This document shows, piece by piece, positions 1-64,000 of a DNA stretch of 64,000 nucleotides. A program made the position numbers and the translations under genes. Source of the DNA: Trichosphaerium sp. ATCC 40318 (Eukaryota; Protista; Tubulinea); the NCBI GenBank assembly GCA_038496445.1, contig JALMLS010000573.1:1-64000 (forward strand). The letters run 5' to 3'. The notes beneath the pieces are model-generated. The model saw only the letters and a list, made by a program, of their open reading frames with translations. It searched no databases and was not told the DNA's origin. Numbering within the stretch: the stretch's first letter is position 1; each line of letters opens with the position of its first letter.

Positions 1-459
1 CTCCAAAGGATGTATGTAACGAATGTATCAAACAAGAAAAATGAAACAACATCAAGAATTACAAACGAAGATATAACATCAAAGAGTAAAGTTGTTTCAG
101 TTGATAACGGACCAAATTCTACAACACGTGAAGATACAACGACAGGAGGAAGTAGTGGTATTAAAAGCGGTACTGAAGAAAACTCAGAGAGTTCTGGGAC
201 ACTTGCAAGTGTCATAGAAGAACAATATGTCACTGGCGGTTTAGCACTTTCTTCATCACCAGGATCTTCAATCGCTTGTTCTGTTTCAGAATCAGGGACT
301 GCTGTACCTGAACCAACGTCTTCTATTGTTTCTGAAACACCTTCAAGTATGAGGAGTTACTCTGTTTCTGTTTCAGAATCACTTACACCAAGTGGTCAAA
401 GTACTCAAAGTAATCAAAGTGATAGTAGTAGCAGTAGTTCAGAAAGTGATGATTTGTAA
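1..459 (+). CDS. 3' end of a Ser/Thr/Glu-rich low-complexity protein (gene begins upstream of window)
   Basis: Open frame from window start to TAA at 457-459, followed by an A-rich AATAAA-like tract. Confidence 0.6.
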   Translation, partial: LQRMYVTNVSNKKNETTSRITNEDITSKSKVVSVDNGPNSTTREDTTTGGSSGIKSGTEENSESSGTLASVIEEQYVTGGLALSSSPGSSIACSVSESGTAVPEPTSSIVSETPSSMRSYSVSVSESLTPSGQSTQSNQSDSSSSSSESDDL

Positions 460-1034
460 ATAAAAAAATATCTATTCTGACCTTAAAACGTTGTCACGAC
501 AGTTTTTGTTGTTAGAATACGCGTGATTGTGGTACGTGTTGGCCTTAAATGTACTTTATACGGCAATCATCAAAACAGCTCAAAGTTCCTATGATGTCGA
601 GGAGAACGTACAATTACGTTGGTTATGTCGATATTACCGCGTTTTAACCAAAATACGTTCCAGATCTCACTTAGAAACCTAGCTACGACGTAACTGTTAG
701 AGAGGCGGTAAAACCGTAATATAATTGTATAGGTAGCGTGTAGGACTGATTTAGTTACTTTTGATGCGATAAAATTGTTTTGTGGTTTCCAGGTAGCTGT
801 AGCGCCTCAAATGTATCACTACGAGCGCACGTTAACATGAGATTTACCAGCGCATGTATTGCGAGTATTTCCAGTCGCAAAGAAGCTGTTGATTTAAAAA
901 AAGCTTTTTGACTAAGAGCGACCTACCCACACCTGCCCACTAATAGCAAAAAACACGACTAACGTCTCCCGAGCGTCTTTTCGTATACTGACTTGTTGTC
1001 AGAGTCTTGACAGCTGACGATTTATAACTCGGAA

Positions 1035-3584: not shown

Positions 3585-3727
3585 AAGAACAAAAAAAAAA
3601 ACAAACTGTAAAATAAAATTATGAATTGGTGCAACCCTTTTTTCCTTTGCTTTTTCCTCTGTCTACAATAAACTAGTAATTTATTTTTATATATGACATT
3701 ACTACAATCATATTTCTCCAATCAAAC

Positions 3728-6552: not shown

Positions 6553-7086
6553 GTGTAATGAATGCGTTCTGGTTTTTGGGTTAACCCGATACAGTTTTGC
6601 ACAAAAAGGAGAACTGTTGAATTGCCCGATTCCTAAAAGTTTGGTACCATCATTCGCATCAGAAAAATGTTATGTTAACTTGACTATTTACTAATCACTT
6701 GTAGGATAGGGTGGGGAGCTGCCTAGGATTCTGGAAAAATCCAAACTTTTTTTTGGGTCAAATATTGTAGAAATCGGGCCTCGAAGGGTTCTTACGAATT
6801 CATGAAGACCCAAAAAAGCAGCACAATACCCAAACTTCTTAACCTTTTACAGATAGTTAGATCAACAGAATTTTCAGCAACAGACATGTCATCAGAAAAC
6901 TAATCAGTAAAGGAAGCATCTCTTCTGGAAATTCCGGGACCTTATGCGTCTCCAGACATGCCTGAAAGCCATTCGCTTATTTGCACTGTATACCCTTGAT
7001 ACGGCACACGGAGGATTACTGTCAAAGATATCAGTACGGCTACAGCAGAGGAAATAAGCGAAAAACAATGTAGAACAACTAAATAC

Positions 7087-7802
7087 ATGTTCAACGTCAT
7101 AAAATCAGCGAGCGAATACGTAATGTGCTTTTTAACTATTTATCACGTGATTATTTTAAAGAAAGGGAATTTGTTTTTTCCCAATTGACTTTTTTTTTCA
7201 GGAAAAAGGATTTTCGTTGGTCGTGGAGTGTCAAGGTGATGAAGTTTTGGTTGAGATTATACACCCTGATGTATTCAAACAGTTGAGAAAGTTTAATTTA
7301 GTTTTACGGCAAGATACAGTTGATAAACAAGAGATAACAGAAGAAGCAGTAAGTGAAGTTTTTCCTTTAACTGAACTAGTTTTTATCATGATTTGCAAGC
7401 ACTGTCTTAGTGTTTACTTCCCCGCTTTAAGCCCTGAGAGATCAAGTATGGCTACTACGTCGGTTTTGGCATTAAAGCGGCCTTTGGGAAGCAGTTATTT
7501 ATTGACTAGTAAAACAAAATTTCGTATTTGTTAAATACTGTTCTTAGGTCATTTCGTTGAGTAGAAGGGTTGAAGATCTGGAAGAGCAGTTGCTTAAACA
7601 AATCCATAAAACAAAGCGGATGGAGATTATATTAACAAATCAATCCAGAGTGATAAAGGAGTTAAAGGAGGAAACAAAAACAAGAAATGATCCAATAATT
7701 GCAAAGAAAAATGATGATTATTCTGTTGGCTCTCTTGGTACAGGTGATTGGTTAAATGTTGTCCTTGTGGCAACTATTGTGTCACTTCTTGTATTGAAGT
7801 AG
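7087..7802 (+). CDS. Small coiled-coil protein with C-terminal hydrophobic tail; possibly the remnant of a longer gene starting at 6886
   Basis: Three exons join in frame; LSRRVEDLEEQL coiled coil; ends WLNVVLVATIVSLLVLK*. Confidence 0.5.
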
Positions 7803-8098
7803 TTGCTTAAAGACATAAACGTTGTATCAACCCTGTTTGCACGTGAATACGCTGTTAAGACGAATGTACTTTCGCTTTTGCATGTGGCGTTTGTGGCAAG
7901 CATCATCAACTCGTATTAATAAAGTGTAATACACCAACAAAGCCATGCATAAATTTAAACTTGCTTGTACGTTAATTGTTTGCTTTTACGGTAAAGCAAA
8001 GTCTTGTACTTTCTGGCTTCTGAGTCCCACCTCCTTTAAGTTGGTACTCAAAAAATAACAGATAAGACTTGTAATGACGAAATGATAATAGTTTATTG

Positions 8099-10327
8099 TT
8101 ATTGAGTAACACGAACAAACACCCATTGTTGATCTCCATTGTTAGTAATTGCTGCCATTTTAGCCTAAATTACAATGTTAAGCTACATAAATATCAATCA
8201 CGTGACGTACACTCTGACGTCTTGAGCGCCAACACCTCCATAAAGTGCTCTTGCAGGGGTATACGAAGGTGTTAAAAGTGTAAGTACAATGTTGCCATTG
8301 ACAACAGTTTTCTTAAATCGCTGGTTTATATTACTAGAGCTGCATGCCCACAAGTGTACATTGCTTCCAGGACCACCGCCATCAAGGCAAAATTGAGTAT
8401 TTCTCTTTTGGTAAGAAAAAAGACCGTCACCACGTGGTAATTCGATCCAATGTTGGTTGTTGTTATTCACTCTGTAGTTCCAGAGATACACCTATGTAAG
8501 AAAAGTCATTCAAAGAAAGAAAACTAAGTATACAGTTGGAAAGTCACGTGCGTCATTGCCACTTGCTCCACCCTGGTTCCCATCTAATGCAAAAGCCAAG
8601 TTGTTACTCTTTCTGATACTAAACATATTGCTACTTGGCATTGACGTAGGTCCGTTGTATGGTTTCAAACAACCATTTGCAACAAAATGTTGAATAGTTC
8701 CACAGCATTGTGCTTGAGCTTTGCGTGAGAACCTATCAAACTTATAGTCTCTGTAAAACATTGTTAAACAAGTATTGTATTTGTAATTGCGTAAAATCTT
8801 ACGGATTATTTGTGAGACCTGCCATGATACCTTTATTGTCATGATTACATCCTGAACTATGTCCAATCTCGTGACCAATACAGCGTCTCAACCCTGGGGC
8901 TCGTTGCCAAGAGCACTGAGCTTTTGAGGAGGTCTATAAAAGATAAGTGAAGTTCTTTTTAGCAATGTAATACTATGTTGCGTACACATAAGTTGTTCGA
9001 AGTCGCCGCTCCAGCACGACTTGAATGTTGACAATCGTTCAATAAAATACCTGCTGCGGTATTTGATGGAACATTTAAGTCAGACCTCCAAGTGTTAAAA
9101 GAAGACAATAGTCCTGAAGGGCATTCTCCTGATGCATAAGAACGTGTATTCCATGCTTCAGGTCCTATTATATGTTAGCTTAATAGTTTTAATAAAAAGA
9201 AAAGTGTACCTGAAGTTTCTCTGACCTCAAGTGCAACAACAGTCACGCGAAGGTTCTAGCTAATGTAAGTTACATCTAAGAGTGAGAGTAGATTCAGTAC
9301 AAAGTCAGATTCGTAAAAGATACCCACATCCATCATTGCTAGCAAATAAATGTTCAGAAAGGTAGAGGAATAAAAGATAGTACCTGTTTGAACATAAGCC
9401 AAAGTTTGAGCAGCAGTTCCAGTCCGTTGTTGAAATCCCACGTTAGCAGCAATGGCAAGAGTGAGTTCGTGTTTTGATTGTGGACAAGGTAGCTTTGGGG
9501 GCGAAAAAGGAAGCGTGTCGCCTTCGGGGATGCCAACCCTGCGAATAGTTGCATTAAAAGTCAAGTAGTACAACTTAAGGCTACGTACCTTTTGCTGATC
9601 GAGTGTTGGCTCTCCATCTCGCTTTTGAAAGAGCCAGTAGATTCTCTTTTCAGGTGTTAAAAATGGAGAGATGGAACAAAAGAAGTACCTCAATAGTAAG
9701 TAAGATGCACTTCCAGCTTTCGACAAGTGATTTTGTGACATGAACCTTTTGTGCCTGATAAAAACACGTGTTAGAAGCCCAATGATATTTTTGTATTACC
9801 TTGATACAGCGTCGAAATCAATACGCTTGTTGTTCAATGTAAAGCCGCCAGTGAAAGTACCATCATCACGTGTGATGAAACGCAAATCAAGATGAAAATC
9901 ACCGATTGCCTTGTACATGTTCGAAGGGATTGGTAGAAACGTCCTGTTCCCTCCATTCTGTACAACAATCTAATACAAGTCAACGAGAATTCGATGGATA
10001 GGTGAGTACGACTGTGGCTAATGAGGTCGTTTGTGTTGGCGTACCTTGGCACATGAGAAAAGATTGAGTGTTGAACACAAGTAAATGTCCAGTTTTTGCC
10101 ATTTTCGAACTTGAAAATCATCTCTCCTTCACGTGGAAACGCTCTCTTTAATCCATCAATTGGTTGAAATGATACTATACCACGCGTTAAATAATAATAC
10201 GATAGCGAAGTACGAGTTTATACTGCGGATCCGTACTTTCGTCGATAACGTCAACATGTTGAGTGTTATCCCAGTACTCTTGGTCCCAGCAACAAACAAC
10301 TATCACTAGCGCCACTATTCGAGTCAG
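8099..10327 (-). CDS. Secreted M12B (reprolysin/ADAM-type) zinc metallopeptidase with C-terminal ricin-B lectin domain
   Basis: Spliced frame gives HEIGHSSGCNHD (HExxHxxGxxHD) with the Met-turn GIM at ~8825-8875; upstream prodomain-like region; QxW/QxF repeats NQHW, NQRF, DQQW with CLDGG. Confidence 0.85.
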
Positions 10328-10829
10328 TCAAGATTTACATTTAGGTTCATTTCGCAGTTACGTATAGTAAATATCCTTATCATGAGCTTATGGTGTTGTT
10401 TGAGATAATATTTTGATTGTACTGACACATGTGAACTGGTACCAGGGTATGCCAGGGACACTACCTAATACCTTTTCAAATCGAATACACTCAAAATTAA
10501 CAGTTAGCCTTTTTGGTGTCCATGTAGCCTTTTTATAAAAGTACTAGCGGCAGCTAGCGATAGTTCTACCATGACGTCATAAAACCGATAGTATCTTGTA
10601 TTAAACTGCATTGTGGTTAGTGTCAATTGGTTTCATTTTAAAATCAATTTTCCGTAATGACAGTTGGGATAATTTGATCACGTGATAAAACTGTTGGTTT
10701 TATCGTTATCTATTCAAGACAACATTTAGGACTAGCCCAATAACTTATCGGGTAGATGAAGGTAAATACGACTACCACACGGTAGTTCTTTCCAAGTAGT
10801 GGTTATAGTTGTTCGCCCATGTACACCTA

Positions 10830-11110
10830 CATAACATGAAATGCAAAAGAGTAAATTTTATTCAGCGTTTGACAAAAGTCAAATAGTTGTTTGGAATACA
10901 ACGGACCTACGTCAATGCCAAGCAGCGATATGTTTAGCATCAGAAAGTGCAATATGTTGCATTTAGCTTTAGATGGTAATGGTGGAGAAGGTGGCAAGAA
11001 CGCATGTACCTGACTTGCAATTATAGTTCCACAACTTGTGCTTGAGATATGTATGATCTGTATACAGTTTTATCAGAACTTAACTGCTTACGGATTATTT
11101 GGTTATTTAT
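10830..11110. pseudogene. Scrambled relic of the metallopeptidase-ricin gene
   Basis: 10897-11000 (+) encodes YNGPTSMPSSDMFSIRKCNMLHLALDGNGG, a diverged copy of the minus-strand 8555-8660; 11023-11100 instead resembles 8694-8810 in the same orientation. Confidence 0.65.
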
Positions 11111-11468
11111 TTTGTAATTGTAACTCTACATGATAAGTTGGGACTCTAGAACATGCGGTTCTAAAATAGTTCAAAGGAAGAGTATTTCTAATCAATCGTT
11201 TCTAGTACAACAACACTATCGCCTAAATACTCTTCCATCGATGCACAAATCTCAACTTTGGCAGCTCGGATTTAGACTGCCTCCAGCACGTGACACAAAT
11301 CCTATCTGATATACATGTAAAAGCAGGTACAAGAAGTTATTCACCATACTCTACAAGACAAATAATAAGACGCAAGTCTGCGAGTTAGAAGAATTCTGTT
11401 GACTATGATCTTTTAACTTTCTTTGTACTTTTCTGTTGGTATTCAAATAGTGTTAATTATAATTTCAA

Positions 11469-14400
11469 ATGGATGTTGAAGGTAATAAGACATATACTAC
11501 ATCGATTTGTACGTTTTGTGACTAAACAATTTTAAAAAGCGCCTTGGTACTTCTATAACGCACGGAGAGAGTGTTTTCAAGGCGTTCCGAGTTCATTTCG
11601 CACCTTGTTAAAAGATATTTCACCAAACGGTACGTTTACAGTTAAATGTCATTCTGCTAACAAAAAAACGATTAGGAGAAGACGTAGACATAAATAACGA
11701 TGTTCTTAGATTTTACAAAGTTCGTGTCAAACAAAAAAAAACAGAAAAAAACGTACTAACTTTTTTTTCAGACAAACGATTCAAGTTTTTGGTGTTACCA
11801 GCTTCATGGTGAGGTACATAACACATATATTCCATTAATACAGTTATTAAAAAATTTTAGTGGGTACCTTATAACCCACGTGATAATCACGTTATCGAAA
11901 GAGCGTATCGCAAAAAAGAGAGCGTTTTGTACTTGGATAGTGGTGTGACATTGTTTCTAACCCAGAATTTACAACGTGTTAATGAAACATGGAGCTTCAC
12001 TCCAATAAAACGTATGAATGTATTAGCATCAGGTGTAGCTCCAAAAAAACCTGTGCCGATCCCTGCTGTATTGCCAGCACCAAAAGGCCTTGGCATGGAA
12101 TTTTTTGGCGTTGAATTATCGAAAGATGATAATGCAGGTACATAGCTTAGTTCGCTTGTTAATTTGCTTATGGCCTTCTAAATAATACTCATAGGAGAAT
12201 ATTCTACTGAAGCTGTGTATAAGTTACAACAGTTGCAGAAGCAAGAGGCAGAACTACAAAAGAAGCTAGAAAATACAATGTTAAAGCTAGCCATAAAAGA
12301 TGAAGAGCCAAGTGCTTTTGAAGGTACAACACCTCGACTGGTCCACTTGATATTTAAATTAAGCGTTAGATATATTCGTTACAAAACCTATAAAATCTAC
12401 ACCACCTCCAGTTTCTGACTTTGCACCAAGTACGCATAAAGCTACTAAACACATATGATCATTAACTTTTTTCAAGCACAAGTTGCACCGGCTCAGCCAA
12501 CTGGTTTTGAAGAACTAGACGACGAAGAAGAAGTCAGCTTAGTAAGGAAACCTAGAAGGTACTTTGACATAAAGTTATTCACAAGCGGCTAATTATACTA
12601 GACGTACTAGGACACCACCAAAAAGTAAAATCTCACTTCAAACAGATTCCAGGAAAAAAAGGGTACCACATTGTAACACGTGATTTATAATTAACAAATT
12701 AAAAACATAGCGTTCTAAAAGTCCAATGGTTGACAAAGAAGAGCAAAAAGCTGCAGCGTACGTGCAAATAACTTGAGAACAAAAGTTTTCTTGCGAACTA
12801 CTTCTGTTTGGTTACCAATTTCTTATCTTCTGTTCAGCGAAATCGCAAAGATAAAGCAAGAAACTGAGCTAGCGAAGAGGAAGCTATCACAAGAAAGAGA
12901 AAGAGTAGCACGTGAGCTCAGAGAAGAGGAAGAACGTCTTGAAAAATTAAGACAGAAGAGGAAGCAAGAAGAACAAGAAAGGCAGAAAAGGATAGAAGAA
13001 GAAAAGAACCGTGCTAATAGTTTGAGACGCTCACGTGATAAAAAGATTACTAAACCTGATCCTGTAACATCATACGCACCTTCAGAAACTCACTACGCAC
13101 TTGAGGAAGAAGATGAAGAAGATATCTTTGCAAAGAATCAAGAAAAAGAGAAAGAAGAGCAAGAAAGACGTTATTTTGAAGAGCAAGCCAGGAAAAGACA
13201 GGAAGAACAAGATCGCCAAATCAGAGAAGAAAAAGAGCGAGAGAGACAACAACTAGAAGATGAGCTTAGAGAATTAGAAGAGCAAGAACGAGCTGCTAAA
13301 GCACGCGCAGCACAAGCTCTTCGAGACAAGGAGAGAGAAACTCTTGAACGTGCACGTAGAGCACGTGAAGCACGTGAAAGAGAAGAAAAATTACGTGAAG
13401 AAGCTGAGAGAAAGAGAATAGAGGAAGAAAGAAAGGCAGAAGAAGAGAAACAAAGGCAAAGAGATGAAGAAAAAGAAAGAACAAAAGTTTCAACTGAGCA
13501 AAAGAAGAAGCAGTTTCTTCAAGAACAGCGTGCTGCTGAAGAAGATGATAGGTTGACACAACAGCAGAGGTTAAGATTAGAGCGTCAGAGGCAAGAGAAG
13601 GAAGAAATGGAACGAGAAAGGGCTAGATTGCAAGCAGTACGTGATAAAAAACGAAAAGAACGTGAAGAACAACGCAAAGCAAGACAACTCGAAAAACAAG
13701 TTACAGAGCCACCAAAGAAAGTTGAAGAACCTACTACAATCGACGTTGAACCTTTACCAGAACAAGAGATAGAGCCAGAGGATGAACCTGTTGTCGAGAA
13801 GCCTAAAAAATACACATATGTTCCTGTTCCAAAATCTTTCATTCCTGGAGCCAAACCAAAGCCTAAATCGATCCCAAAGAAGACTCAAACTAAGGTGGTT
13901 GTTCCTAAAGAAGAACCAGAAGAAGATGAACCTATTGAAGAAGAGGTTGTTGAAACGAAAAAACCAGCACCTCAAAAAAGAAGTGGAAGAAAAATTCAAA
14001 GTCCTTTCTTGCAGAATGAGTCTGATACTGCTAAACCTATATTCCCTTCTGGTATGGGTGGTGGTGGACCTGCTATTAAAATAAGGACTAGCTCTAATCC
14101 AACAAAGAGGGCGCAACCTGTACGCCACATGACAAATAATCTGGCTTTTTCTTTCAACCTTTTTTTTTTGTTCAAATACCACATCCTACCTTTACCCTCT
14201 GATGTTATCAAAAGGTGTCATCAAGTGGACGATCTAGTTCTCCTAGTAAACGTACTTCTATCCTTGAACAAGATGATGAAGACGATATATTCTCTAGAGA
14301 TGATACAAAGGTATGTTTTACTTTAAAATTCATGTATTGTTTTTCTTCAACTTGTTAAAACACGCTTCGTGATTGACCTGTTGGGTTTTTTTTTGAAGGT

Positions 14401-20800: not shown

Positions 20801-21697
20801 CAATTTATTTTTCAGTTGTTTTTATGGGTATAAAAAGAAACGAAAATATGTTGGTAATTGTAGAGTTGGAGTATGTGCACCACGCGTGGGGCTTCCTAGC
20901 CATTTGGTCGAAAATAATTTAAGGGAGTCCTCCGTCTAGCTTAGTGGGTGTATGCATTGCGAGGTGGAATTGTCAAAGTTCCATCTTAATCCGACGTAGT
21001 GTGAAAGCTTGAATCGTTACATTAGCCAGCATGTCCTCGTAAGTAGCACGTAATTAACTTAGGAACTCGGTCTGGGCCAAGAAAATTATAAGGTCCGATA
21101 TAGAGGTGAGTTCTGCCGTTAGGGAAAAGCTCTATATAAACTTTGACTAGGCTCTGCATAGCATCCTATGATCGTTCTTTTTGTTCAACAACATTTTGTG
21201 GATAGATTTCTATTTGTAAGCAGCTGACCACTACTAGCATCTCGAAGGCTGTTTGCTGTACAACAAGGTCCAATTTACTTTTCATTTCTTAACCGCTTTT
21301 GTGGATACTTTACAAAACGAGAGTACGCCTTGGTTATAAACTTTTGTAATAAGATAGTAATCAGTTGTTGGATGGCTTGTGAGGTAAGTAGCCGCGTGGG
21401 TATCAAAAATCTACCAGTGTAGCTCACAAGGTACTAATGGTAGAAAATGATCGAGATACCTCGTTCTTGCTAGTGGTGGGTCATAGAAAAATAAACACGT
21501 GCAAAAATTGTAGATTCGCCAAATGTCAGCATTAATAGCGACGAGAACATTCGACTGATTTTTCTGCCAAAAGATACAAGAACAAAACAGTATTTTATAC
21601 TGAAAACCAGCAAAGCTTGCGTGGTAAAGATGTCACATGTCAAAGAGAAAACTGCTCAAATTTCGTTTTTGGTTGTGTTTACATTGTTAAGAGACGC

Positions 21698-33183: not shown

Positions 33184-33608
33184 GCCGCATGCAAAAAGAA
33201 AGACACACTCACTCCTCACTGTATCATAAAAAGAAATAAACACCCACTGTATAGTACCCTGAATTCAAGTCTATGTTAATTGTGAAACGTCATGTTACGT
33301 TGTTTGATTTTCAAAGAAGATACAACAAATAGCCTTGTTTGAAATATCACGTGATACTATTAAAAATAGTTCATACCAAACTATGACGTACAGCGCCATC
33401 CAGGTAGGTATTTATTTGTTTGATCACCGTCCTATCTATTTTGCCGGAAAAGAAAGTCGAGTTTTATTGAGAAGCTACCACAGTAAGCTTATGAGCGCCG
33501 TACAACGTTTGGCGATAATATTATAATGGTTGACGCTTTTTTTACTGAGGTAATTAAAAAGTCAGGCGTTTTCTAAGCGTTTTTTCAAACATGAGTAAAT
33601 AGCAACCA

Positions 33609-42613: not shown

Positions 42614-43192
42614 ATGGGTATAAGAAAAGGACAAACTCTTGGAGAAGCACATGGCCGTATAGCCCGGTTAACTGATGAAATGAACGAAAAAACAGACGAG
42701 CTAATTTTTGGAAAGTCTTTCGGTGAGATAACCAAGGATGAGTTCTATCCTCTTTTGAAAACATGGAATAATGAGTTGGAGGAGTTTACAAAAGAAGTAA
42801 GTAGTATGTTATTGTCTTCGTTTTAGTTACATTCTTGTAGACTATAATGGGATGGGAAGAACCTGATGAAGATGATATGGCTATAAGAGTTCGTATGTGT
42901 GTTAAGTTGATGTATAGAATAAAGTCTTGCGAGCACGTGATGAAGGAATGTGGATCTTTTTGTGAAATAATGAATAGGTACTTTTTTCTCTTTTTTTTTG
43001 ATTTGTTATCACGTGATTTGCAGTTAACTAACACGTGAGTTTAGCCAAAAATTGGATATTTGTACAGAGCAGAAGCGTGGTATGAAGAGTTTATACATGA
43101 GATCATCGTGTAGTGATTATGAGAAGATTATGAAAGATAATCAAAGCAAAGCAGCCGCTGCAGAAGCCTTAAACCCAAAAACAGAGCTATAA
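42614..43192 (+). CDS. Small hypothetical protein (at least 3 exons; true start may be upstream)
   Basis: Exons join in frame at GTAAG/GTAC donors; ends NPKTEL*. Confidence 0.55.
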
Positions 43193-46213: not shown

Positions 46214-46361
46214 ACGTACAATCATGATTTCACTGAACAAAACGTGGAATTTTCGCTTACAGTCAGGCTGACTAATGAAGACTTTGCAACAAACCTTTTT
46301 CGTGCTTGTACGCATAAGTAGTATCAAACAAACGCTTTCATACTATCAATATATCTGTTTT

Positions 46362-47005
46362 GATGGAAACAAGCACTAATGGGATAATTAACAATGTACC
46401 AGCCGAAATATGGATAATGATCCTTAATTTCCTACCCAACAAATATTTACATTGTGTAAGAGCTGTATGTACTGTATTGTTATTTTTCATAACAGATTTT
46501 TTGGATTACACTCCCAAACTTGTTATTAAAGATGAAAAACAGTAATAACTTCAACAGTTCAACAAAACTGCCCTTTTCATTGGAAAACATGCAAAGTTGA
46601 GATTCTTTATAAAATGAAAGCAAAACACTTTAAGGCATATACTCAACGAGCTTTTTCTGTTCATAGCATTTGTCCAAATGTGAACGAGAACTTTGTTAAA
46701 GTATTGGCTGGAGTGCATACAGTCGATCTTAATTGTACAGATGTGACAGATGAAGGTTCAAAGCGTTGGCAGGAGTTCACAATTTACCTAGCCAGGTGTG
46801 AACATATTACAGATAATGGCATTAAAGAATTGGCTGGCGCTATAGCATTACCTTGCTGACACTTTAGTCACAGATGAAGGCGTCAAAGCACTTGCTGGGG
46901 TCCACACTATTAACCTCTCTTGCACTTCAGTAACAGATGAAGGTGTCAAAGCATTGGCTAGTGTACATACAAGTGACCGACCAAGGTGTTAAAGCACTGG
47001 GTGGA
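46362..47005 (+). pseudogene. Disrupted F-box + LRR gene (paralogue of 60003-61208)
   Basis: NNVPAEIWIMILNFLP F-box; LAGVHTVDLNCTDVTDEG repeats broken by in-frame stops and frameshifts. Confidence 0.75.
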
Positions 47006-49170
47006 GCTGTGCCTGAGTCTCTACTTCCGTGATTTCTTACAATAAAACCATCAGTGTAGTATCTGTATGACAAAGCCATAGGGATAAGGAATAACATAAT
47101 ACCCACTATTCTCTAGTAGCTCCTAGGCTTTCAATGCTTCTGATTATTTGAGAAAATGGAGTTGAAGAAAAAGTTGCAGCAAGGTTAGAAATACTTCCTT
47201 TCGAAGAAATAGTGTCTAAACCAGCATTACAGGAATAAAAAGTTAGTTTCGCGCCAGTGGTTTGCGTATAAAGCACGGAACTCATGCACCCAACGTCTTT
47301 GTTTAAGTTAGTTCTTGAACTGCGGAGTTTGTTTTGCAAACGTCGATTAAAGCCAGCTCCATTTCTTGAACGAGTTTTGGCGCAAATAATAAGTTATCCC
47401 TTTTGTAAAATAGTTTTGATTGAACCAAAACTGTTTTTTGAACCTGATTTTTTGTTACCACATTAAACCATACGACCTTAACAGCTACGCGATTTCACAT
47501 ACACGCGCTTTTGCCACATACCCAAATTAAGCAGTAACCATTTTTTTCATTACTTGTTTCGACAGCTTTGTTGGTAAATGCTAAATTCATTGTGGTGTCA
47601 ATCTCTTACATTATCAAGATGGATTGTGCTTATATCAGAGAAAGAAAAATTAGAAATAAGCATACTCCGTTACAGACGTTTGGGTAAACTTCAGTTGACT
47701 TCGTATCAATCAACAATAACAAAACCAACAAACAAAACATCTTACAATCATTTTGTCCCATTGGAAAATTTCTTATTGTAATAAAAAGAATTAGATTTTT
47801 TTTTAAAGTGTTCTTGTATAATAGAAACAAATGCTTGGCGCTTCAGAGCCACAAGACATTTTGTCTTCCTCCCAACATCGTCTTAGGTTCACGTTCTTAA
47901 GAATAAAATGAGAAAGATAACAAAATGTCAACTTATTCTGTGTAGATTTCCACGACTTCCACACCTTTATGTTAATACAACAGCGAAATATAATTACCAA
48001 TACGATGCAATAATACCTCACATTAAAAATGAAATCACATGTTTGGCTAGACAAAGAATACGTAAACAACTCTTTGTTGACTTTAAAAACCATATGTTTA
48101 GGAAGGTCTCATTCTTACAGGAATATTCCAAGAAATCACAAGTACATTAGGTAATACATCACATTCTTAGACTAAAAACTACACGTTAACACAAACTTGC
48201 AATTACAATACTCGCTAACGGTTTGAGAAGTTCTGTTCAAAAGCCCAACTACCACGGACCTGAATTGCTAACAGCTCACCCTACGATAAACGCAGAAGAA
48301 AAGATTAAACTTTGCTGAGCTTTCACAGGATGTATTATAGTTCGTATTGGTTGTTTGGAGGTGGTTCCGCTTACAACAAATGGTAAAAAATGTTGAACTT
48401 ATTGGTAAAAACTAGATAGATTGTTGTGTATAGCACGCTGTTAGATTGAATGCTACTCAAAATAACCCATGCCATATTCTAAAACTCTGGTAGCGATTTT
48501 TTGTTCCAAAAGCTGTTTTGACTGTGCTCGTTACTAGTACTTTATATTTTTTTTACTAGCCCGCTAGTATTATTACTGTACGCTCTGTACACGCCAATAC
48601 AGGTTGGTACTTAAAAATTAACGAAACAAGATGTGGTGGTTTTATGTCACGTGCGTGTAATAAAATAAAAACGCTTGGTAACAATTCCTCTGAGTATTTT
48701 TTGTTTTTTGGTTCTTTTCATCTTTTGTTACCTGACTGTGTTCTTAGATGGCCATAAAACTGGCGATGGTGATTCAAAAGAATCAAGCCTATCAACATTT
48801 GCGTCATTGTTAATAGCAGGCGAATGTGATATGTTTGTAGGCACTCATCATTCCAATTTTGGAATTATAGTGCGAATGTTACAAGTTCGAAAAAATCGAT
48901 TTTTTTTGTTATTTTACACATTCTAGATGGGTAACAATCGTGGACTTATACCACCTCATAAGTTGATTACAGGCAATGATTGGGAACAAGGGAAAGAACC
49001 AAAAGAAAGTTCACGCCGTTAGACGTACAATCATGATTTCACTGAACAAAACGTGGAATTTTCGCTTACAGTCAGGCTGACTAATGAAGACTTTGCAACA
49101 AACCTTTTTCGTGCTTGTACGCATAAGTAGTATCAAACAAACGCTTTCATACTATCAATATATCTGTTTT

Positions 49171-49812
49171 GATGGAAACAAGCACTAATGGGATAATTAA
49201 CAATGTACCAGCCGAAATATGGATAATGATCCTTAATTTCCTACCCAACAAATATTTACATTGTGTAAGAGCTGTATGTACTGTATTGTTATTTTTCATA
49301 ACAGATTTTTTGGATTACACTCCCAAACTTGTTATTAAGATGAAAAACAGTAATAACTTCAACAGTTCAATAAAACTGCCCTTTTCATTGGAAAACATGC
49401 AAAGTTGAGATTCTTTATAAAATGAAAGCAAAACACTTTAAGGCATATACTCAACGAGCTTTTTCTGTTCATAGCATTTGTCCAAATGTGAACGAGAACT
49501 TTGTTAAAGTATTGGCTGGAGTGCATACAGTCGATCTTAATTGTACAGATGTGACAGATGAAGGTTCAAAGCGTTGGCAGGAGTTCACAATTTACCTAGC
49601 CAGGTGTGAACATATTACAGATAATGGCATTAAAGAATTGGCTGGCGCTATAGCATTACCTTGCTGACACTTTAGTCACAGATGAAGGCGTCAAAGCACT
49701 TGCTGGGGTCCACACTATTAACCTCTCTTGCACTTCAGTAACAGATGAAGGTGTCAAAGCATTGGCTAGTGTACATACAAGTGACCGACCAAGGTGTTAA
49801 AGCACTGGGTGG
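49171..49812 (+). pseudogene. Second copy of the disrupted F-box + LRR gene
   Basis: Almost identical to 46362-47005 and shares its lesions. Confidence 0.65.
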
Positions 49813-52409
49813 AGCTGTGCCTGAGTCTCTACTTCCGTGATTTCTTACAATAAAACTATCAGTGTAGTATCTGTATGACAAAGCCATAGGGATAAGGAAT
49901 AACATAATACCCACTATTCTCTAGTAGCTCCTAGGCTTTCAATGCTTCTGATTATTTGAGAAAATGGAGTTGAAGAAAAAGTTGCAGCAAGGTTAGAAAT
50001 ACTTCCTTTCGAAGAAATAGTGTCTAAACCAGCATTACAGGAATAAAACCAAGTTAGTTTCGCGCCAGTGGTTTGATAAAAATCACGTGATATGCACTTT
50101 GCCGTAACGTCTTTGCACTTTGCCGTAACGTCTTTGTTTAAGTTAGTTCTTGACACTGCGTAGCCCAGCTCAACCCATTGTTGTGAGTGCCTTGATGAAC
50201 GTCGATTAAAGCCAGCTCCATATTCTTGAACGACTCTGTCTTTGGCGCAAATAATAAGAGCATTATCCTTGTTGTAAAATATATTACTTCATTGATACCA
50301 AAACTGTTTTTTGAACCTGATTTTTTGTTACCACATTAAACCATACGACCTTAACAGCTACGCGATTTCACATACACGCGCTTTTGCCACATACCCAAAT
50401 TAAGCAGTAACCATTTTTTTTCATTACTAGTGTTTCGACAGCTTTGTTGGTAAATGCTAAATTCATTGTGGTGCCTCAATCTTACAACCATTATCAAGAT
50501 GGATTGTGCTTATATCAGAGAAAGTTGAAAAGAGGGCGCTGAGAAATAAGCATGGGACTCCGTTACAGACGTTTGGGTAAACTTCAGTTGACTTCGTATA
50601 AATCAACAATAACAACAACCGACAAATCTTAAACAACATGGCGAGCAGCAATCACCCACATCCCACCCAAAAATTTCCTTTTCATTTGTTTTAAAAACTG
50701 TAAAACCTTTCTTTTATTTTCCAAGTGTTCTTGTATAATATAACAAATGCTTGGCGCTGTGCTAGAGCCACAAGACATTTTGTCTTCCTCCCAACATCGT
50801 CTTAGTTAACGTTCCTTGGTTAGTTGATAGAAGCAAGTCAACTGAGAGTGTTAGAACTCTAACCAGTTTCTATTTCTGGCAAAAACTTGCAACTTCTTTC
50901 AGACCTTACAAGACTTGACAGTTCTGAGAACTAGCACAATGTGAACTTGTTTACATGTCACTAGTGTTTAGGATGTAGGCGCAATCAGCAATGTGTACTA
51001 TCACATGACCTTATGTACCGTAAGTGCAAGTAATGTTTCAATTGCAACACAACGAAATAACTCAAGCAAAATGACCATAGTATTTTATCAGGTGCTCGCT
51101 ACACAAACGCATCAAAGAGCTGAAGGGGAATAAAAAAAGCTGCGATGGCTTTTAGACTAAAAACTACACGTTAACACAAACCATGCAATTACAATACTCG
51201 CTAACGTGTTTGAGAAGTTTCTGTTCAAAAGCCCAACTAGCACGGATTACTTTCTTCCATTTGCTAACAGCTCTACCCTACGATAAACGCACGGCCCTCA
51301 TGAATTTCATGATCTCTTTAGGTTTGATTGGTGTGTTTCACGATGTATTATAGTTCGGATTGGTTGTTTGGAGTTGTGGTTTCCGCTTTTCTTCCGTATG
51401 GTAAAACACGTGGTTTCAATTGTTTTTTTTTATTAAATGTAGATAGACTTGTTTTGTAGGTGAGCACGCTGTTAGATTGAATGCGCTCAAAATAACCCAA
51501 GTTAGGCCTGATATTCGTAAACACTCTGGTAGCGATATTTTTGTGTCTGGGAGAACCTTCCAGCTGTTTTGAGCTGTTTTGACGGAGCGTTACTAGTCCT
51601 CTTATATTTTTTTTACTAGCCCGCTAGTAAACACAATCAATATTACTGTACGCTTTGTACACGCCAATACAGGTAGGTACTTAAAAATGTAACGAAACAA
51701 GATGTGGTGGTTTTACAAAAATCACGTGCGTGTAATAAAATAAAAACGCTTCGTAACAATTCCTCTGACCTGTAAACCGTGTTATGCAGCCCTTTCTGCC
51801 GTTAGTGCGTTAGTTGTTACGAACTTGTTGCTACCTCCACTACGAGTTGCTCATTGTACGATAGCGTGTACGTGACATCTAAAAATCAGCAGGTGAAACC
51901 AGCATAGATAGAAAAACAAAATAAAGCGAATAAAATCTCCACTGGAATAAAGTAAGCAACAACATTTTTTACAGCCGAAAAGATACAACAGCACAACATT
52001 CTTGTATTTTGGCGTGTTATAATAATGCTAATTCTGTCTGGTTACAATAACGGCATTATGATAATATCCTTTGTGCTTGCCTATCGGGGTAAAAAATAGC
52101 CCGCAAAAGAGTATTCCACTTTCGAGCGATTGAAGGTCTCCAAGCGGTTAAAAAAAAACCCAAACCAGAACGCAAACCAAATTACAAAAACACTTCACTG
52201 AAAAATCTCATGTATCAAGGTATCACCGACTTAATACTGCTTTGTGATAACCTCAAGGTGACAACACGTCATGACAGAATCGCAGAATGACAAAAACCAA
52301 CATTTTGAACAGGAAGAACCAACCCACAACATCCATCTCCCCATAATTGAAATTGTGTTTTCTTTTGCAGGTTTGTAATGCTTGGTAAGCAAATAGTTGA
52401 CAAAGTATA

Positions 52410-54935
52410 GCAACAAATGGCTACAGTGAAGTTGTATCAACATTACTCAACGCCAATGCTAATATTGAAGTTGTTGATAAAGATGGAAAGACAGCTTTGA
52501 TTTACACTACAGGTAATAGCACAAATGAGATAAAAACTATGTTTACTTACAATCATTTGAGATTTTGACTATATATCAATGCTAATGTTGAATTTAATCA
52601 AACCAAACGCAAATAATATTGATACTATTGATGAAAGTGAAACCACCAAGGATTCAGGTATTGGGCACATTACAAAAAATTTGGTGAAATAATAGCTAAC
52701 ACTGTAAGTAGTAGTAACTCCGTGCCAAAGAAAGTGGCAAGACTTTATGTTCATTTTAATTAGAGAAGTGGTATCAAATACACCCTCAGCTGGAGAAAAA
52801 TTCATAACTTTCTTAAAATACTGTCCAAGTGGTAAACAATGCCGTCCACTGTGGAGATACTGTAAAAAGCACTATTCGCAAAATGTCAACGTAAAGGGGA
52901 GAAAAAAGTTTGACGAATGGCTTCGTAGCTTGGTACACTTTATTGAATACCAATACCTTAAACTAACCATACAACGTTTAGCCAACACGGTATTATTTCA
53001 AACTGGCAATGGAAAAAGGTATTTGTTATTTAATTTGTTCTGCATGCGATCCCAAAGTTGTATTGTCTCCAGTACGATATCTTCACTGTTAACGTCTACA
53101 CTACAAACAACATTCTTTTTCTACAGGAATTCTGGAAACAAGATGGGCTATCAATGCAAGGTATTCTGCATGATATGCCCAATGATGCTTGGGGTAATAA
53201 CAGTCAAGACGATTCCTTAAAAGAAGAGTGTATTGAAGGTAAGAAGTGTGTGGTGATATAATACTAAAAAAAGTTTTCAAAAGGATTAAAAGGTGAAAAC
53301 GCATGGAGTTTAAATCCGCGATTGTATTTTGCAAATAATTGGGACAGCTCTAACACGTGCGTTCAATTTCTTTTTATTAATTCTTATATTATAAAAAGAG
53401 GCATTGTTGCAAAGGCGACACACTACAAAATACTGAATCTCCTCGATACAAATGACAAAGTGGCTGTCAGGGAGTTCAACATCCTCAAACAGGAGATGTC
53501 AAAACTACATGGCTGTGACAATTACGATATCATTGAAGCGACTCTCGTTTATAATGACATCTTGACAGAAAACTTTGGTCGATTCAACGAAATACTGACA
53601 CACAGACATCAGTACGGTTGCTCCACACTTCATAGGCATTTTTGTGATTCTAAACATGCACCTACTAGAGAACTGCCCAAGTTGTTTAAAAAACAAAATT
53701 GGAAAGAAAGTACCTACGATGAATACAAAGAGACTGTGTACCAAAAGTTCAACTCCCTCACTGCTTTTAATGATTGTTATACTGAAAAAAAAGATAAGGT
53801 AATGTTCTTGGTACTCTTGCACTACAAACATTTTATTTAGTTACCAGTGATATTGATGGTCCATGGAACAAGCGAAGAAGCAGCTTACAGTATTGTAAAG
53901 GCTGGTTTTGGAACTGTGAGTTCTTTAGATGCTGGGTACTATGGTCAAGGGATATACTTCACTGTACGTTATTACCCAATTTTTGCAGGTGGTCAGTATT
54001 CATTTTCGCCAATAGAGAAGCATAAAGTATGCTACTTCATATGATTTATCAGGAAGAACTGCAAAAACACTGGTTTTAAGTCTTGTTACTCCTGGGAACG
54101 TTTATCCGGTAAGCAAACAATAATATCAATGTGGATATTCTTTACTTACTTGACAAAAAGCATGATCCTCTCATACCTATAGCAAGCAAAGATGGTGCCA
54201 GATACCGCACTGAAAGCTTACATGGAAAGCCAATAAAACCAGGCTATCAAAGTCACTATGCATTGGTAGACCGCACTGGTAAACTTCTGCCACCAAATAA
54301 ACTTAAAGATGCAGTATACGATGAGCTGGTAGTGGCACAAGGTACACTCAGCAATACAATTGAAAAATGTGATTAAATTCTCAAACACTATTTTAGATAC
54401 TCAAGCTGTTGCTCGGTACATCATCAAAGTTGAACGTAAAGAACGTCAAACTTCAAAAGCCAAGAAAGTTGATAAAAAGACAAAGAAAGAGATAGGCGAT
54501 AATGAACAAACTGAAGATCAAGCTTCAAAGGTAGATACTGATGGTTCAGCTGGCGAGCTACCTGATGATGAACTATCTGATTCTGACGACACTTTTATTT
54601 CTAACAGGTATAATTTTATATCTCTTTCTTTTAAACTTAAGTTTTGTAATAGAAAACTGTGGGCTGCCCATGATGATTCAACTGCTGATGAACAGTCAAG
54701 TTACAATTATGTCAATCTCGAACTAAAATTACAAGAATCAAACGAGGTAGAGAAATTAAAGAAGAGCCTGGCTGAACTTCAGCGGAATTCACAGAAAACC
54801 ATAATCAATCTCAAGGAAAGCGTCAGCAACCTTTCCAAAAGTGCCCAAGATCTAATGCGAGACAACACTAGCCTAAAGGAGAGGAATGCCATTCTTATGG
54901 CAAAACTAGCTCTCCTTGAAAGTACAGCAAAGTAA
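52410..54935 (+). CDS. PARP-family (H-Y-E) ADP-ribosyltransferase-domain protein with C-terminal coiled coil; ankyrin-repeat fragment at the possibly decayed 5' end
   Basis: MVHGT...AGYYGQGIYFT...KYATSY...PGNVYP...YDELVV; upstream ATNGYSEVVSTLLNANANIEVVDKDGKTALIY (52410-52510). Confidence 0.75.
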
Positions 54936-60002: not shown

Positions 60003-61208
60003 TTAATTATAGATACTGCTTTTAATAAGTAGTTTGTTACTTCTAATGTCAATTGAAGTTCCACGAACAAAAAGTACATGAACACCTGTTAGTTCATTAA
60101 TACGTTTTTCAGTAACGGAAGTAAAGCGAAGACAAATTGTATGAACATTCTTTAAGACCTTGATACCTTCATCAGTAACTGAAGTGTTTGAAATAGAAAT
60201 CTCATGAACATTTTGTAGGAATTTAATACCTTCATCTGTCACTCCAGTATCATTAAGGAAAATAGTGTGAACACCCTTTAACTCCTTAATACCTTGATCT
60301 GTCACTTTGGTGTGATTTAAGTAAATAGTATGAACTCCAGCAAGAAATTTAATACCTTCATCTGTCACTTTGGTGTGATTTAAGTGAATAGTATGAACTC
60401 CAGCAAGAAATTTAATACCTTCATCTGTCACTCCAGTATCATTAAGGGAAATAGTATGAACACCCTTTAACTCCTTAATACCTTCATCCGTCACTTTGGT
60501 GTGATTTAAGTAAATAGTGTGAACACCTTTCAACTCTTTAATACCTTCATCTGTCAACTGAAGACAACCTATAAGATTTATGTTTTGAAGGCCAGGTGCA
60601 ATTGCTCTGAGATCTTCATCATTGATTTCAGAATTAAATACTTTTGCTTTAACATGACGACACCCAGATAGCATTGAATATAATGTACCAGTAATCTTCA
60701 TCTTAATTTCACTGTTTTTTTTAACACCTTGATACTTTCTCATTTTCAATACATCTTGTACAGTTCTTAGTAGAACAGTTTTATACCCAACAATATCATG
60801 AATAATATCAGCTAATAAATGACATGATTGAACCACTGAAAATCTTGTTTTTGCATCTGTATGATTTAAAATATTTGAAATAACTTCAATTGGAAAATTG
60901 AGAATATTTAGTTGTTGTTCGCAAAGTGTTGTTTGTTTACTTCTTGGTACCACTTGAGCCTTGCAAAGTAGGTCAAGTTCGGTACTGCTATGTACTACGT
61001 GCTCTTTTTGTGGGCTAACAGTTGTATTCATGTCATTAAACAGAGTATTGAGTTGTTTAACAAGTTTGGTGTTTGAAGAGTTTAAAATACTCTCGAGCTG
61101 TGTAACGAAGGTTTGGCGTCGTTTTGTCATAACTTTAACAAATTCTTCTGGGTTTCTCTCTTTAAAGTATGTGAGTGCTTGGTCTATTGATACACCTGAG
61201 AAACTCAT
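60003..61208 (-). CDS. Intronless F-box + leucine-rich-repeat protein
   Basis: ILNFPIEVISNILNH F-box; 22-aa repeats VTDEGIK.L.GVHTI.LN.T. Confidence 0.9.
   Translation of the reverse strand: MSFSGVSIDQALTYFKERNPEEFVKVMTKRRQTFVTQLESILNSSNTKLVKQLNTLFNDMNTTVSPQKEHVVHSSTELDLLCKAQVVPRSKQTTLCEQQLNILNFPIEVISNILNHTDAKTRFSVVQSCHLLADIIHDIVGYKTVLLRTVQDVLKMRKYQGVKKNSEIKMKITGTLYSMLSGCRHVKAKVFNSEINDEDLRAIAPGLQNINLIGCLQLTDEGIKELKGVHTIYLNHTKVTDEGIKELKGVHTISLNDTGVTDEGIKFLAGVHTIHLNHTKVTDEGIKFLAGVHTIYLNHTKVTDQGIKELKGVHTIFLNDTGVTDEGIKFLQNVHEISISNTSVTDEGIKVLKNVHTICLRFTSVTEKRINELTGVHVLFVRGTSIDIRSNKLLIKSSIYN
60100..60560. repeat. 66-bp coding tandem repeat (LRR units)
   Basis: AATACCTTCATCTGTCACT-type unit recurs every 66 bp. 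Confidence 0.9.
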
Positions 61209-61811
61209 GATTTATGCGGGGTTATATGTAATTTACTGTGAAGAAAAGACCAACTTAATGAAGTTTGTTAAGCGATGATCCAGAATGCGACCACGTGTTT
61301 TGTTTGTCTAGACACTAATATTGCCAAAAGGGAAAAAGATACATTAGTAGTATGTGTATGCTTAGAAAAATAAAAAACGTGGAAGTAAAATTGTAGAATT
61401 CTAAGAAGTAGACTCAACGACGAGATGTCACGTTTATCTCAACCATTAGGTTGGTAGCATCAATATGTAAGGAAGTGGTCTTGCCCGCCTTTTGGCGTAG
61501 CTGTAAGCTAGACTTCCTTATAAATACAGCAACAGAAAGCTTACCAATGCGACCTAATTTGGAGAAAAGCATACCAAACCCGGTTTTGTTCATGCGTTTG
61601 GTGAAGTGTACAATAGGATACTTGTGCCACACAGTAGATTGGCTAGTGCTTCTATGAACTAAGTTTTCGTTCACACGTCGCGTGTCTCCCCACGCGAAAG
61701 AAGATACCTTGTAGCAGTATAGACGCTATGTAGTGTATTTCATAGGGTAGAGGAACAACTGTGAAACCATAGTTGACTGGCACGTGCCATTATTGTCGAA
61801 AAACAGCTACA

Positions 61812-64000
61812 ATGTGGCAGCAACTCCTTGTTATTTCATCCGTCCTTTCTGTGATATCAGTAGTGGCGACTATGACGCTTCTTCCGCCTGTTATTGAAGT
61901 TGATACAATTCTCAATATTACTTCCGGCCCTTATCTTTTTAACGCTTCTTTTGTGACTATACTAGCAAAGCTCGAAATGCAGCCAGGATCAGTTTTGTAT
62001 ACCACCGGGAACATCAATTTCAAAATGAATGGTTATCTTAGAGCTCATGGTAATACCACACATAGTGTTGAAATAATCGGAAAGAATATAAGAAGGACAA
62101 CGCTTGGTGATGATTATACATTTAGCAATGCAATCAATATCCAATACGGAGATCTTTCAAACTTGGCTTTCTTCACACGAAGTACAAAGGTTAACAATAT
62201 CAAATGCGAAGACGTTAATATTATAGTTAACGCACCTGTCGAAGACGGATACAGTTTTGTTCAAATGAGAGAATCAACTATAAGCTATACCTCCAAGGAA
62301 CTTATACTTTTTGATGATAGTACTTTCTTCAACACCCAGATACTTCCTATTTTTTATCATTACGATAAACCTTCAATAGTGTTCCGCAGCAGTATCTTCT
62401 CAACTGATGATTCTTTTAAAATACAAGCTCATCCTATCCTCGCTTCTGTTTACCTCTCTAAAAGTACATGGAACACAAAAGGTATTGGAAAGAATATTAT
62501 TATCTCTCATGCTATTCACTCAAACATAACAATAAACAGTCCACGTGATAAACACAACGCTATGACGATATACCCAATCGAAATAACTTTTTCAACGTTC
62601 ACAGTAACTAATACAGATATAACCATTCAATTCTGTATTCTACCATCACGTGACAATGGTTGTGATTACTGTGGACTCGATTTTAGCTATAACACTTTGG
62701 ATGCCGATAAACGCTCATCAATATCCATCTTTAAAAAGAAAGTCAGTCTGAGCGAAGTTTCTGATAATATTCTTGTTTCATCCAATATATTCTTGTACAA
62801 TTCATTAGGAGTTATGTCATTCAACAACACTTTTTCGCCTTCACGTGATGATAGTACGAATAACGGAGTATTGACATTTACTGGGATCTTGTACCAAAGC
62901 AGAATCAACAATATGAAGGTAAACATACAAGGATCAATAGAACAATCTTCTTTGTTAAACTCTACAATTAACTTGATAGATGCGGTCAATGCATACTTAG
63001 GAAGTAATTATTGGGGTACAACAAACTTGACAGATATCAAATCAAGAGTTTGTGACGTACACTGTAACGCTTCAAAAGGGTTGGCTACTTTCGAACCTAT
63101 ACTTTCACTTCCTTACATGTCTCCTGTTACCCCTTCCCCTCGAGCTCCTACAACAACACCATCGCCAACAACAATCCCTGCTGTACCAAGTGCTGTACCA
63201 CCTACAGAATCGCCTCCATATCATTCGCCGAATACAAATACAACAGCTCCAACATATAACACAACAGCTCCTACAACACCAGGTCCAACAACAATTCCTG
63301 CTGTACCAAGTGCTGTACCACCTACAGAATCGCCGCCATATCATTCGCCGAATACAAATACAACAGCGCCAACATACAACACAACAGCTCCTACAACACC
63401 AGGCCAACAACAATTCCTTCTGTACCAAGTGCTGTACCACCTACGGAATCGCCTCCATTTCATTCGCCGAATACAAATACAACAGCGCCGACATACAACA
63501 CAACAGCTCCTACAACAATACCGTCTGTTCCAAGTGCTGTACCACCTACGGAATCGCCTCCATATTATTCACCGAACACAAATACAACAGCTCCAACATA
63601 CAATACCACAGCACCAACTGAGGCACCATATTACAACACTACGGCCCCTACAACACCTACAAGTACGCCTGCGAGGCAACCCATAACTCGTGCGTCCTTA
63701 TTGTTTAGATGACTAATACTAACCTACACCACAGCGCCAACATCAACACAGCCACCTGCTAAACCACATCCTCCAGCCATCGCACCGTCACTTCCTCCAT
63801 TTGCTCCACCGAGCACATCCCCGCCCACACATTCCTCTCCACCAAATGTGAATCCTGGCACACCAACAACAATAGTACCATCGTTTAGTCCCACACATTC
63901 TCCTCCACCTACTGTGAATCCTGGCATACCTACAACAACGGAACCTTCGTTTAGTCCCACGAAAAAACCCACGATCACTCCAACTTCAGCTACAACAAAA
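61812..64000 (+). CDS. Large secreted/surface protein: beta-helix-like region, NYWG module, mucin-like P/T stalk; runs off the window end
   Basis: Signal peptide MWQQLLVISSVLSVISVVA; NYWGTTNLTDIKSRVCD...ATFEPIL; P/T repeats with apparent frameshifts from ~63404. Confidence 0.75.
63165..63610 (+). repeat. ~120-bp coding tandem repeat, ~3.7 copies
   Basis: CCAAGTGCTGTACCACCTAC at ~63186, 63306, 63425, 63530. Confidence 0.9.

Follow-up and report, generated by a model that had tools for sequence, protein, structure and literature searches.

Why would a eukaryotic genome carry one short palindrome, CACGTG, about once every 0.9 kb, inside genes and between them? The question is raised by a 64,000-nt stretch of Trichosphaerium sp. 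ATCC 40318 (contig JALMLS010000573.1, 36.9% G+C), hereafter the window, to which all counts refer unless stated otherwise. The original prediction, made by eye, put the number of CACGTG copies at 69 or more; an exact count returned 69 (mean spacing 922 bp), and the coordinates it had listed match the recount.

Enrichment of the complete palindrome

Dinucleotide-preserving shuffles (n = 100) yielded a mean of 9.9 copies and a maximum of 20, and Markov models of orders 0, 1, 2, 3 and 4 expected 7.4, 9.8, 11.7, 18.8 and 37.7 copies, respectively. Relative to base or dinucleotide content the excess is 7-9x. CACGTG ranked first among all hexamers under each Markov order from 0 to 4, leading by ratio at order 0 and by z-score at the maximal order (z = 5, with the runner-up hexamer at 2.9). 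The excess thus outlasts the correction for 4- and 5-mer frequencies that had been proposed as a check on it (69 against 37.7), and the expectation of the 5-mer model is high largely because the CACGT and ACGTG 5-mers are counted from the sites themselves. Among the 64 palindromic hexamers the second most enriched reached 1.9x, and GTGCAC, which is CACGTG reversed and has an identical base composition, was present in 6 copies. The excess of CACGTG is real, strong and unusual.

The boost is confined to the complete palindrome. Measured against the dinucleotide (order-1) expectation, one-off variants were ordinary (AACGTG 1.07, GACGTG 0.96, TACGTG 0.97, CAAGTG 1.03 and CATGTG 0.99), and so were the deamination products, with 33 copies of CATGTG/CACATG against 33.3 expected and 23 of TACGTG/CACGTA against 23.7, while the half-sites CACGT/ACGTG outside full sites stood at 0.8x. 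The sole enriched variant was CACGCG (2.55x), which shows no AT flank preference and is largely explained by the four copies of the 8-mer palindrome CACGCGTG. This 8-mer is CACGTG with an extra central CG, and ACGCGT was also found at 1.9x; CACGCGTG may be a variant site for the reader of CACGTG, or may stem from CG duplication within sites.

Outside the core, A occupies position -2 in 52% of the non-coding half-sites (P = 1.5e-5) and T position -1 in 43%, the latter being the class-B flank on an E-box core, and coding sites show like tendencies. The preference is equal on both sides of CACGTG, yet uncoupled between the sides. AT-flanked half-sites make up 35 of 138, against 10% expected (P = 2e-7), and each AT flank multiplies the enrichment about 2.5-3x; the 8-mers ATCACGTG and CACGTGAT are enriched 24x, and the 10-mer ATCACGTGAT occurs in 5 copies against 0.07 expected (about 70x), at the five positions where it had been noticed before (7142, 10677, 33346, 43008 and 50082). 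Such graded gains from the flanks suggest, indirectly, a dimeric protein that recognises about 10 bp in an affinity-like manner.

The copies are scattered as independent events would be. Inter-site gaps have a coefficient of variation of 1.05 and counts per 4 kb a variance/mean ratio of 0.89, both Poisson-like, and the largest gap (4,623 nt) is as Poisson sampling gives. By self-BLAST of the window, flanking sequence was common to one site pair only (48648/51723), the other flanks being unrelated. Matches between left and right flanks, direct or inverted, stayed at permutation expectation, and there is therefore no target-site-duplication signature and no footprint. By self-BLAST and flank comparison the sites thus have no repeat context in common, in line with the earlier claim of context-independent over-representation. 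A transposon footprint, with CAC...GTG termini and an AT target duplication, was rejected, left and right flanks being statistically independent, and an origin from a dispersed repeat or a miniature inverted-repeat transposable element finds no homologous flanks around the motif beyond the one duplicated pair.

Sites in exons, introns and intergenic DNA

The 20 long open reading frames (ORFs; 13.9 kb) hold 15 copies of CACGTG and the other 50 kb hold 54, which in both cases is 1.078 per kb. For the ORFs, synonymous-codon shuffling predicts 2.7 copies and codon-order shuffling 2.1, and 15 was never reached in 500 trials. Coding DNA with backing from Pfam or from contigs of public sequencing runs (4.5 kb) gave 6 sites against 0.49 expected (P = 1e-5). 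To divide the remainder we used our own constrained gene finder (24 genes, 22 kb of coding sequence, 89 introns), and the conclusions on compartments were cross-checked with the ORF-only and the Pfam- or contig-validated sets. Predicted coding sequence, introns and intergenic DNA carry 0.82, 1.35 and 1.19 CACGTG per kb, which is 6x, 17x and 11x over the base-composition expectation of each compartment itself; the excess persists in each of them, as it does under the codon-shuffled controls that had been suggested. The gene finder mislabels a contig-supported exon around 11877 as intron. Two other approaches to gene models were dropped, a codon-only gene scan for being too noisy and an unconstrained Viterbi gene finder for over-predicting introns (850-1370, then 200-290, in successive versions).

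Upstream of 23 predicted start codons we counted 3, 7 and 13 sites within 100, 250 and 500 nt, against 2.5, 6.2 and 12.4 expected from the genome average, and downstream of stop codons the counts were, if anything, lower. The sites are not concentrated in promoters relative to gene bodies, as E-box-type elements are, and the pair at 61292/61781 is the sole promoter-like arrangement in the window. These counts, together with the compartment densities, bear out the view that CACGTG lies in introns, exons and intergenic DNA without restriction to promoters. Along with the synonymous-codon controls and the Poisson spacing, they also uphold its comparison with the context-independent over-representation of the cyanobacterial palindrome HIP1, as opposed to a promoter element.

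Inside genes the excess arises from synonymous codon choice. The frame nCA-CGT-Gnn holds 11 of the 15 ORF sites, and among the 31 [SPTA]-R-[VADEG] tripeptides in predicted coding sequence 12 are written NCA-CGT-G, against 3.3 from codon usage (P = 4e-5); CGT is not the preferred Arg codon in the window, AGA being commoner. Such tripeptides are not themselves over-represented (31, with 26.2 predicted by shuffling the codon order, P = 0.19), nor is the His-Val dipeptide in predicted coding sequence. An excess of sites without an excess of tripeptides therefore indicates a pressure on DNA at synonymous positions, too weak to change the proteins detectably. The frames read earlier from individual sites were all correct (13032 and 62647 as nCA-CGT-Gnn, 24104 and 44025 as CAC-GTG), and so was the overlap of site 17210 with the predicted stop codon of a minus-strand gene resembling G protein-coupled receptors (GPCR-like).

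Contigs assembled from public runs (four runs, sparse) could be placed on positions 7100-13099. They carry the sites 11877, 12909 and 13032, and they splice out the GT..AG introns that hold the sites 7144 and 12677. Because independent contigs carry the sites or splice around them, the sites are not an assembly artefact, and CACGTG occurs in both real exons and real introns. The contigs show 6 variants over this region, few for judging polymorphism at the sites, and prove 9 GT..AG introns of 43-82 nt. These introns (7120-7201, 11479-12837) are tiny, with 6 of the 9 at 43-48 nt, and their 5' splice sites are mostly GTAC (GTACGT, GTACCA, GTACAA) or GTAA, not GTAAGT; hexamers starting with GTAC are about 2x enriched window-wide. 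Four predicted introns start with the GTG of a CACGTG (CAC|GTG; 8545, 19295, 27290 and 53354). A role of CACGTG as splice donor was rejected, as these four introns have no RNA support and would cover 4 of the 69 sites. Taken at the level of DNA, CACGTG, most enriched as ATCACGTGAT, is favoured in exons, in tiny introns and between genes.

A tandem duplication gave a view of how sites change. Self-BLAST aligned 44951-47896 with 47704-50814 at 86.5% identity, and a third copy is partial at 77%; the unit measures about 2.9 kb (44951-53800), and each full copy has an 82-codon ORF (46614-46859, 49422-49667). Of the four sites that lie in aligned DNA, three have no counterpart in a sister copy, and in each case the site itself is affected by an indel or by several clustered changes: site 51407 differs from its sister copy by three substitutions plus a 9-nt insertion, and site 48648 by substitutions and indels. 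The cases are few and anecdotal, and the spots border rearranged sequence; as they stand, they argue against strong conservation of individual sites and hint that several bases may change at once when a site is gained or lost. Elsewhere in the window, an inverted pair of about 130 nt (8546-8679 and 10880-11007, 80% identical), of which one member starts at a CACGTG and the other has TACATG at this place, is probably a pair of paralogous exons on opposite strands.

In other genomes we looked at seven loci around Ras homologues (120 kb in total), from Balamuthia mandrillaris, Acytostelium subglobosum and metagenomic eukaryote contigs, and found 9 CACGTG against 9.1 expected. As these Amoebozoa-like loci show no excess, the excess appears to be specific to the lineage of Trichosphaerium.

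What may hold the site at this density

Our preferred reading, to which we would give a probability of roughly 0.38, is that CACGTG is the genome-wide site of a dimeric protein and is kept by a weak, position-independent fixation bias. When a word is raised 7-9-fold and its neighbours stay at their neutral level, the cause should be either a fixation bias that acts on the entire word or loss rates that are lowered uniformly. A boost to the full site alone fits one-off variants at expectation, whereas a single-base mutational path would distort particular neighbours. The core stands at a stationary enrichment of about e^2 and the AT-flanked 8-mer at about e^3, from which we infer a bias, by weak selection or by conversion, whose scaled strength would be about 2 and about 3, respectively. 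The reader of the site would be a dimeric sequence-specific DNA-binding protein with the half-site A-T-C-A-C, and the likeliest candidate would be a class-B basic helix-loop-helix leucine-zipper (bHLH-ZIP) protein of the USF/SREBP/TFE/Cbf1 kind; the class-B E-box has the sequence CACGTG, and bHLH-ZIP proteins of the SREBP/Cbf1 type use ATCAC as their half-site. The bias could hold the site at about 1 per 0.9 kb irrespective of position, and it could come from weak selection for a function exerted across the genome, the organisation of chromatin or chromosomes for instance, or alternatively from a gene-conversion advantage of bound sites, rather than from selection for gene-by-gene regulation.

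With the class-B E-box, G-box and CDEI elements (USF, TFE/MITF, SREBP, Max, Cbf1) the motif shares the core, the palindromic extension by T at -1 and A at -2, and the affinity-like grading of the flanks. The known sites concentrate at promoters, enhancers or centromeres, with no enrichment over the genome as a whole, whereas the sites in the window show no preference for promoters and draw on synonymous codons inside genes. The best-known core of eukaryotic transcription factors thus behaves unlike a regulatory element, and if a bHLH-type reader is indeed responsible, a binding site selected or driven genome-wide, synonymous codons included, would be new.

Several observations weigh against a dimeric reader. 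Regular spacing or periodicity of CACGTG was not found in the window, A/T homopolymer (poly(dA:dT)) tracts show no association with the sites, and local G+C around them shows no trend. No promoter-proximal excess was seen upstream of the 23 predicted start codons, and this distribution does not look regulatory, which means that the function of a bHLH-type reader would have to be global; to our knowledge no transcription-factor site of eukaryotes has an equal enrichment inside and outside coding DNA. The flank at -2 has a greater effect than that at -1, contrary to what is usual for bHLH proteins, the sites are not visibly conserved between the tandem copies (3 of 4 differ), and there is no bHLH gene in the window. 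At the same time, the gene models behind the compartments are crude and recovered 6-7 of the 9 RNA-proven introns. As a separate candidate, the site of a general regulatory factor, composed of CACGTG and a poly(dA:dT) tract, was rejected since no such association was found.

A drive by methyltransferase or repair is nearly as likely as the dimeric-protein reading. CACGTG is the recognition site of type II restriction-modification systems (PmlI/Eco72I), and this counts for a true analogue of HIP1, in which a methyltransferase would mark CACGTG and methylation-linked repair or nicking would favour the methylated palindrome, a molecular drive without local function. HIP1, GCGATCGC, is the highly iterated palindrome (HIP) of cyanobacteria (Elhai 2015, PMC4390886; Xu et al. 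2018, PMC5861425). HIPs have been linked to methyltransferases that recognise their core, and the mechanism proposed is a ratchet of methyl-directed repair, the set point of which would lie near 1 per 1000 nt (Elhai 2015, PMC4390886).

The likeness is considerable. CACGTG too is a short palindrome, over-represented many-fold under Markov models, spread at about 1 per kb over coding and non-coding DNA and lying outside any longer repeat or mobile element. The observed density matches Elhai's model (PMC4390886), and the position independence and Poisson spacing are as a drive predicts. Both motifs combine a core with flanks that add to the enrichment. The differences are the host, a eukaryote with spliceosomal introns, the E-box core CACGTG instead of GCGATCGC, an enrichment of 7-9x (24x for the 8-mer) against the 15-300x reported for HIP1, and the lack of periodicity or regular spacing in this window; given the eukaryotic host and the motif, we therefore speak of an analogue of HIP1 and not of a member. 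Four results tell against such a drive. Single-position T:G correction of the Vsr type should distort CATGTG/CACATG and TACGTG/CACGTA, which stand at 0.99x and 0.97x; a gain of 2.5-3x per AT flank suits graded binding affinity better than it does a type II enzyme; the spacing shows neither set point nor regularity; and a CpG observed/expected ratio of 0.83 gives little sign of heavy methylation.

Slightly more doubtful is the proposal, framed for a eukaryotic HIP system, that a horizontally acquired pair of C5 methyltransferase and mismatch nuclease, or another sequence-specific repair, converts near-cognate or heterozygous sites and could thereby have driven the palindrome to tens of thousands of copies, overriding codon preference. 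The nearest repair systems are Dcm/Vsr very-short-patch repair (CCWGG, E. coli) and the ScmA/Vsr-like pair of Caulobacter (PMC12907096), where a methylated palindrome has a frequency that is maybe shaped by sequence-specific repair; the distortion of T-containing one-off words that they lead one to expect is absent here (CATGTG 0.99x, TACGTG 0.97x). Uptake sequences (USS/DUS) and Chi are similar to CACGTG in being context-independent, present at about 1 per kb, placed in permissive coding frames and kept by DNA-processing machinery rather than by a local function, but they are non-palindromic, strand-oriented and tied to natural transformation or RecBCD, with no counterpart evident here.

In bacteria, the many-fold and context-independent excess of such words (HIP1, uptake sequences, Chi) points to DNA-processing machinery that shapes whole genomes. 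No report of a comparable palindrome excess in any eukaryote was found in the searchable full-text literature, the closest being the HIP1 papers (PMC4390886, PMC5861425). If methylation or repair is the cause, the organism would offer an accessible eukaryotic model for the origin of iterated palindromes and the HIP1 problem, and with a eukaryotic HIP system a drive by motif-specific biased repair would be described in a eukaryote for the first time. For promoter studies in this organism there is also a practical consequence, since motif-enrichment analyses will report CACGTG spuriously unless a genome-wide background is used.

A by-product without function is less likely again: the hexamer could be hypomutable, for instance by being shielded, or it could spread as a cold spot of conversion, suppressing nearby breaks in cis, with the result that a homologue without the hexamer would be converted to carry it. 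Position independence fits this explanation, and loss rates lowered about 9-fold, or a conversion bias, would yield the observed equilibrium. The rapid turnover in the tandem copies, with 3 of 4 sites absent from a sister and the differences clustered, is unlike hypomutability, a sequence-specific reader would still be required, and we know of no precedent. A related idea, the protection of CpG by TET (prompted by 10.1101/2021.12.29.474486), was discarded, as one protected CpG cannot give 9x when the CpG observed/expected ratio is already 0.83.

It is very improbable that the sites are ordinary E-boxes in the promoters or enhancers of a large regulon under bHLH control in a compact genome. The hexamer does form the canonical core of the E-box/G-box, and in a few genes one copy lies 30-90 nt ahead of the start codon (23658, 61292, 61781), but upstream regions hold sites at genome-average density, exons and introns are 6x and 17x enriched deep inside genes, synonymous codons are bent towards the site, and there is no clustering. 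An artefact of composition, a dispersed repeat family, assembly or polishing has next to no chance of being the answer: the 5-mer model does lift the expectation to 37.7, but the word still ranks first there (z = 5), half-sites outside full sites are at 0.8x, flanks are unrelated bar one duplicated pair and uncoupled between left and right, and contigs of other public runs carry the sites. What probability these readings leave over goes to causes that we have not thought of.

Features and neighbouring genes of the window

The features that bear on these arguments are collected in Table 1.

Table 1. Coordinates of CACGTG sites and related words in the 64,000-nt window
Feature	Position	Strand	Remarks
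CACGTG, 69 dispersed copies	1..64000		exact count, shuffles, Markov orders 0-4, Poisson-like gaps
ATCACGTGAT in RNA-proven 82-nt intron 7120-7201	7142..7151		joint 7119>7202, GT..AG ends
ATCACGTGAT in DNA without predicted gene	10677..10686
CACGTG covered by contig 11859-12138 of a run labelled 'RNA?', taken as exon	11877..11882
CACGTG in RNA-proven 48-nt intron 12663-12710	12677..12682		run contigs
Two sites (12909, 13032) in exon, both nCA-CGT-Gnn	12909..13037	+	independent-run contigs cover 12899-13089, no mismatch
Two sites separated by 9 nt in coding stretch rich in Lys/Glu/Arg, peptide AREARE	13362..13376	+
CACGTG over predicted GPCR-like stop codon	17210..17215	-	peptide ISLST*
CACGCGTG, related 8-mer palindrome	20881..20888, also 30986, 57730, 58983		4 copies against 0.3 expected, Poisson P = 3e-4
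ATCACGTGAT in DNA without predicted gene	33346..33355
ATCACGTGAT with second CACGTG 22 nt downstream at 43032	43008..43017
Homologue of 51723 in next tandem copy; absent from 86.5%-identical copy 1	48648..48653
ATCACGTGAT confined to tandem copy 2; AGCACGGAAC at this place in copy 1, preceded by about 85 nearly identical bases	50082..50091
Homologue of 48648	51723..51728		sole site pair with common flanking sequence
Divergent intergenic region, one site upstream of each start	61292..61786		61292 about 85-90 nt from start of F-box/LRR gene; 61781 31 nt from start of ORF 61812

The window is eukaryotic and gene-dense, with a Ras GTPase, a MORN-repeat protein, an F-box/leucine-rich repeat (LRR) protein, the GPCR-like gene and spliceosomal GT..AG introns. 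The Ras GTPase is 98% identical to an MMETSP transcript, and its best named relatives are Amoebozoa. Exact-protein look-ups of the Ras, F-box/LRR and MORN genes returned no public record, and Rfam and tRNA scans of the window gave no matches. The GPCR-like gene is multi-exon (17209-18949, minus strand), and its exon 17577-17765 matches Pfam GPR_Gpa2_C with E = 1.2e-6.

The F-box/LRR gene (60003-61208, minus strand) is intronless and contains internal repeats that recur about every 63 nt (60064-60556); at its C-terminus there is a Pfam match to the catalytic domain of 2-hydroxyacid dehydrogenases, probably spurious on LRR sequence. The ORF at 61812-63686 (625 codons) contains internal tandem repeats (63143-63618) and three CACGTG sites and has no Pfam match, and its 625-residue product found no homologue among 5.8 billion proteins, within the length limits of the search.

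With regard to other words, the overall CpG observed/expected ratio is the 0.83 cited above. The GC-rich palindromic hexamers CCCGGG, CCGCGG, GGCGCC, GGGCCC, GCCGGC and CGCGCG (about 2.5 expected each) and TCCGGA (7.4 expected) are absent. ACCGGT, GTCGAC and CGATCG occur once each against 7.4 expected, and CTTTGC/GCAAAG is mildly enriched (35 and 37 copies against about 21-25).

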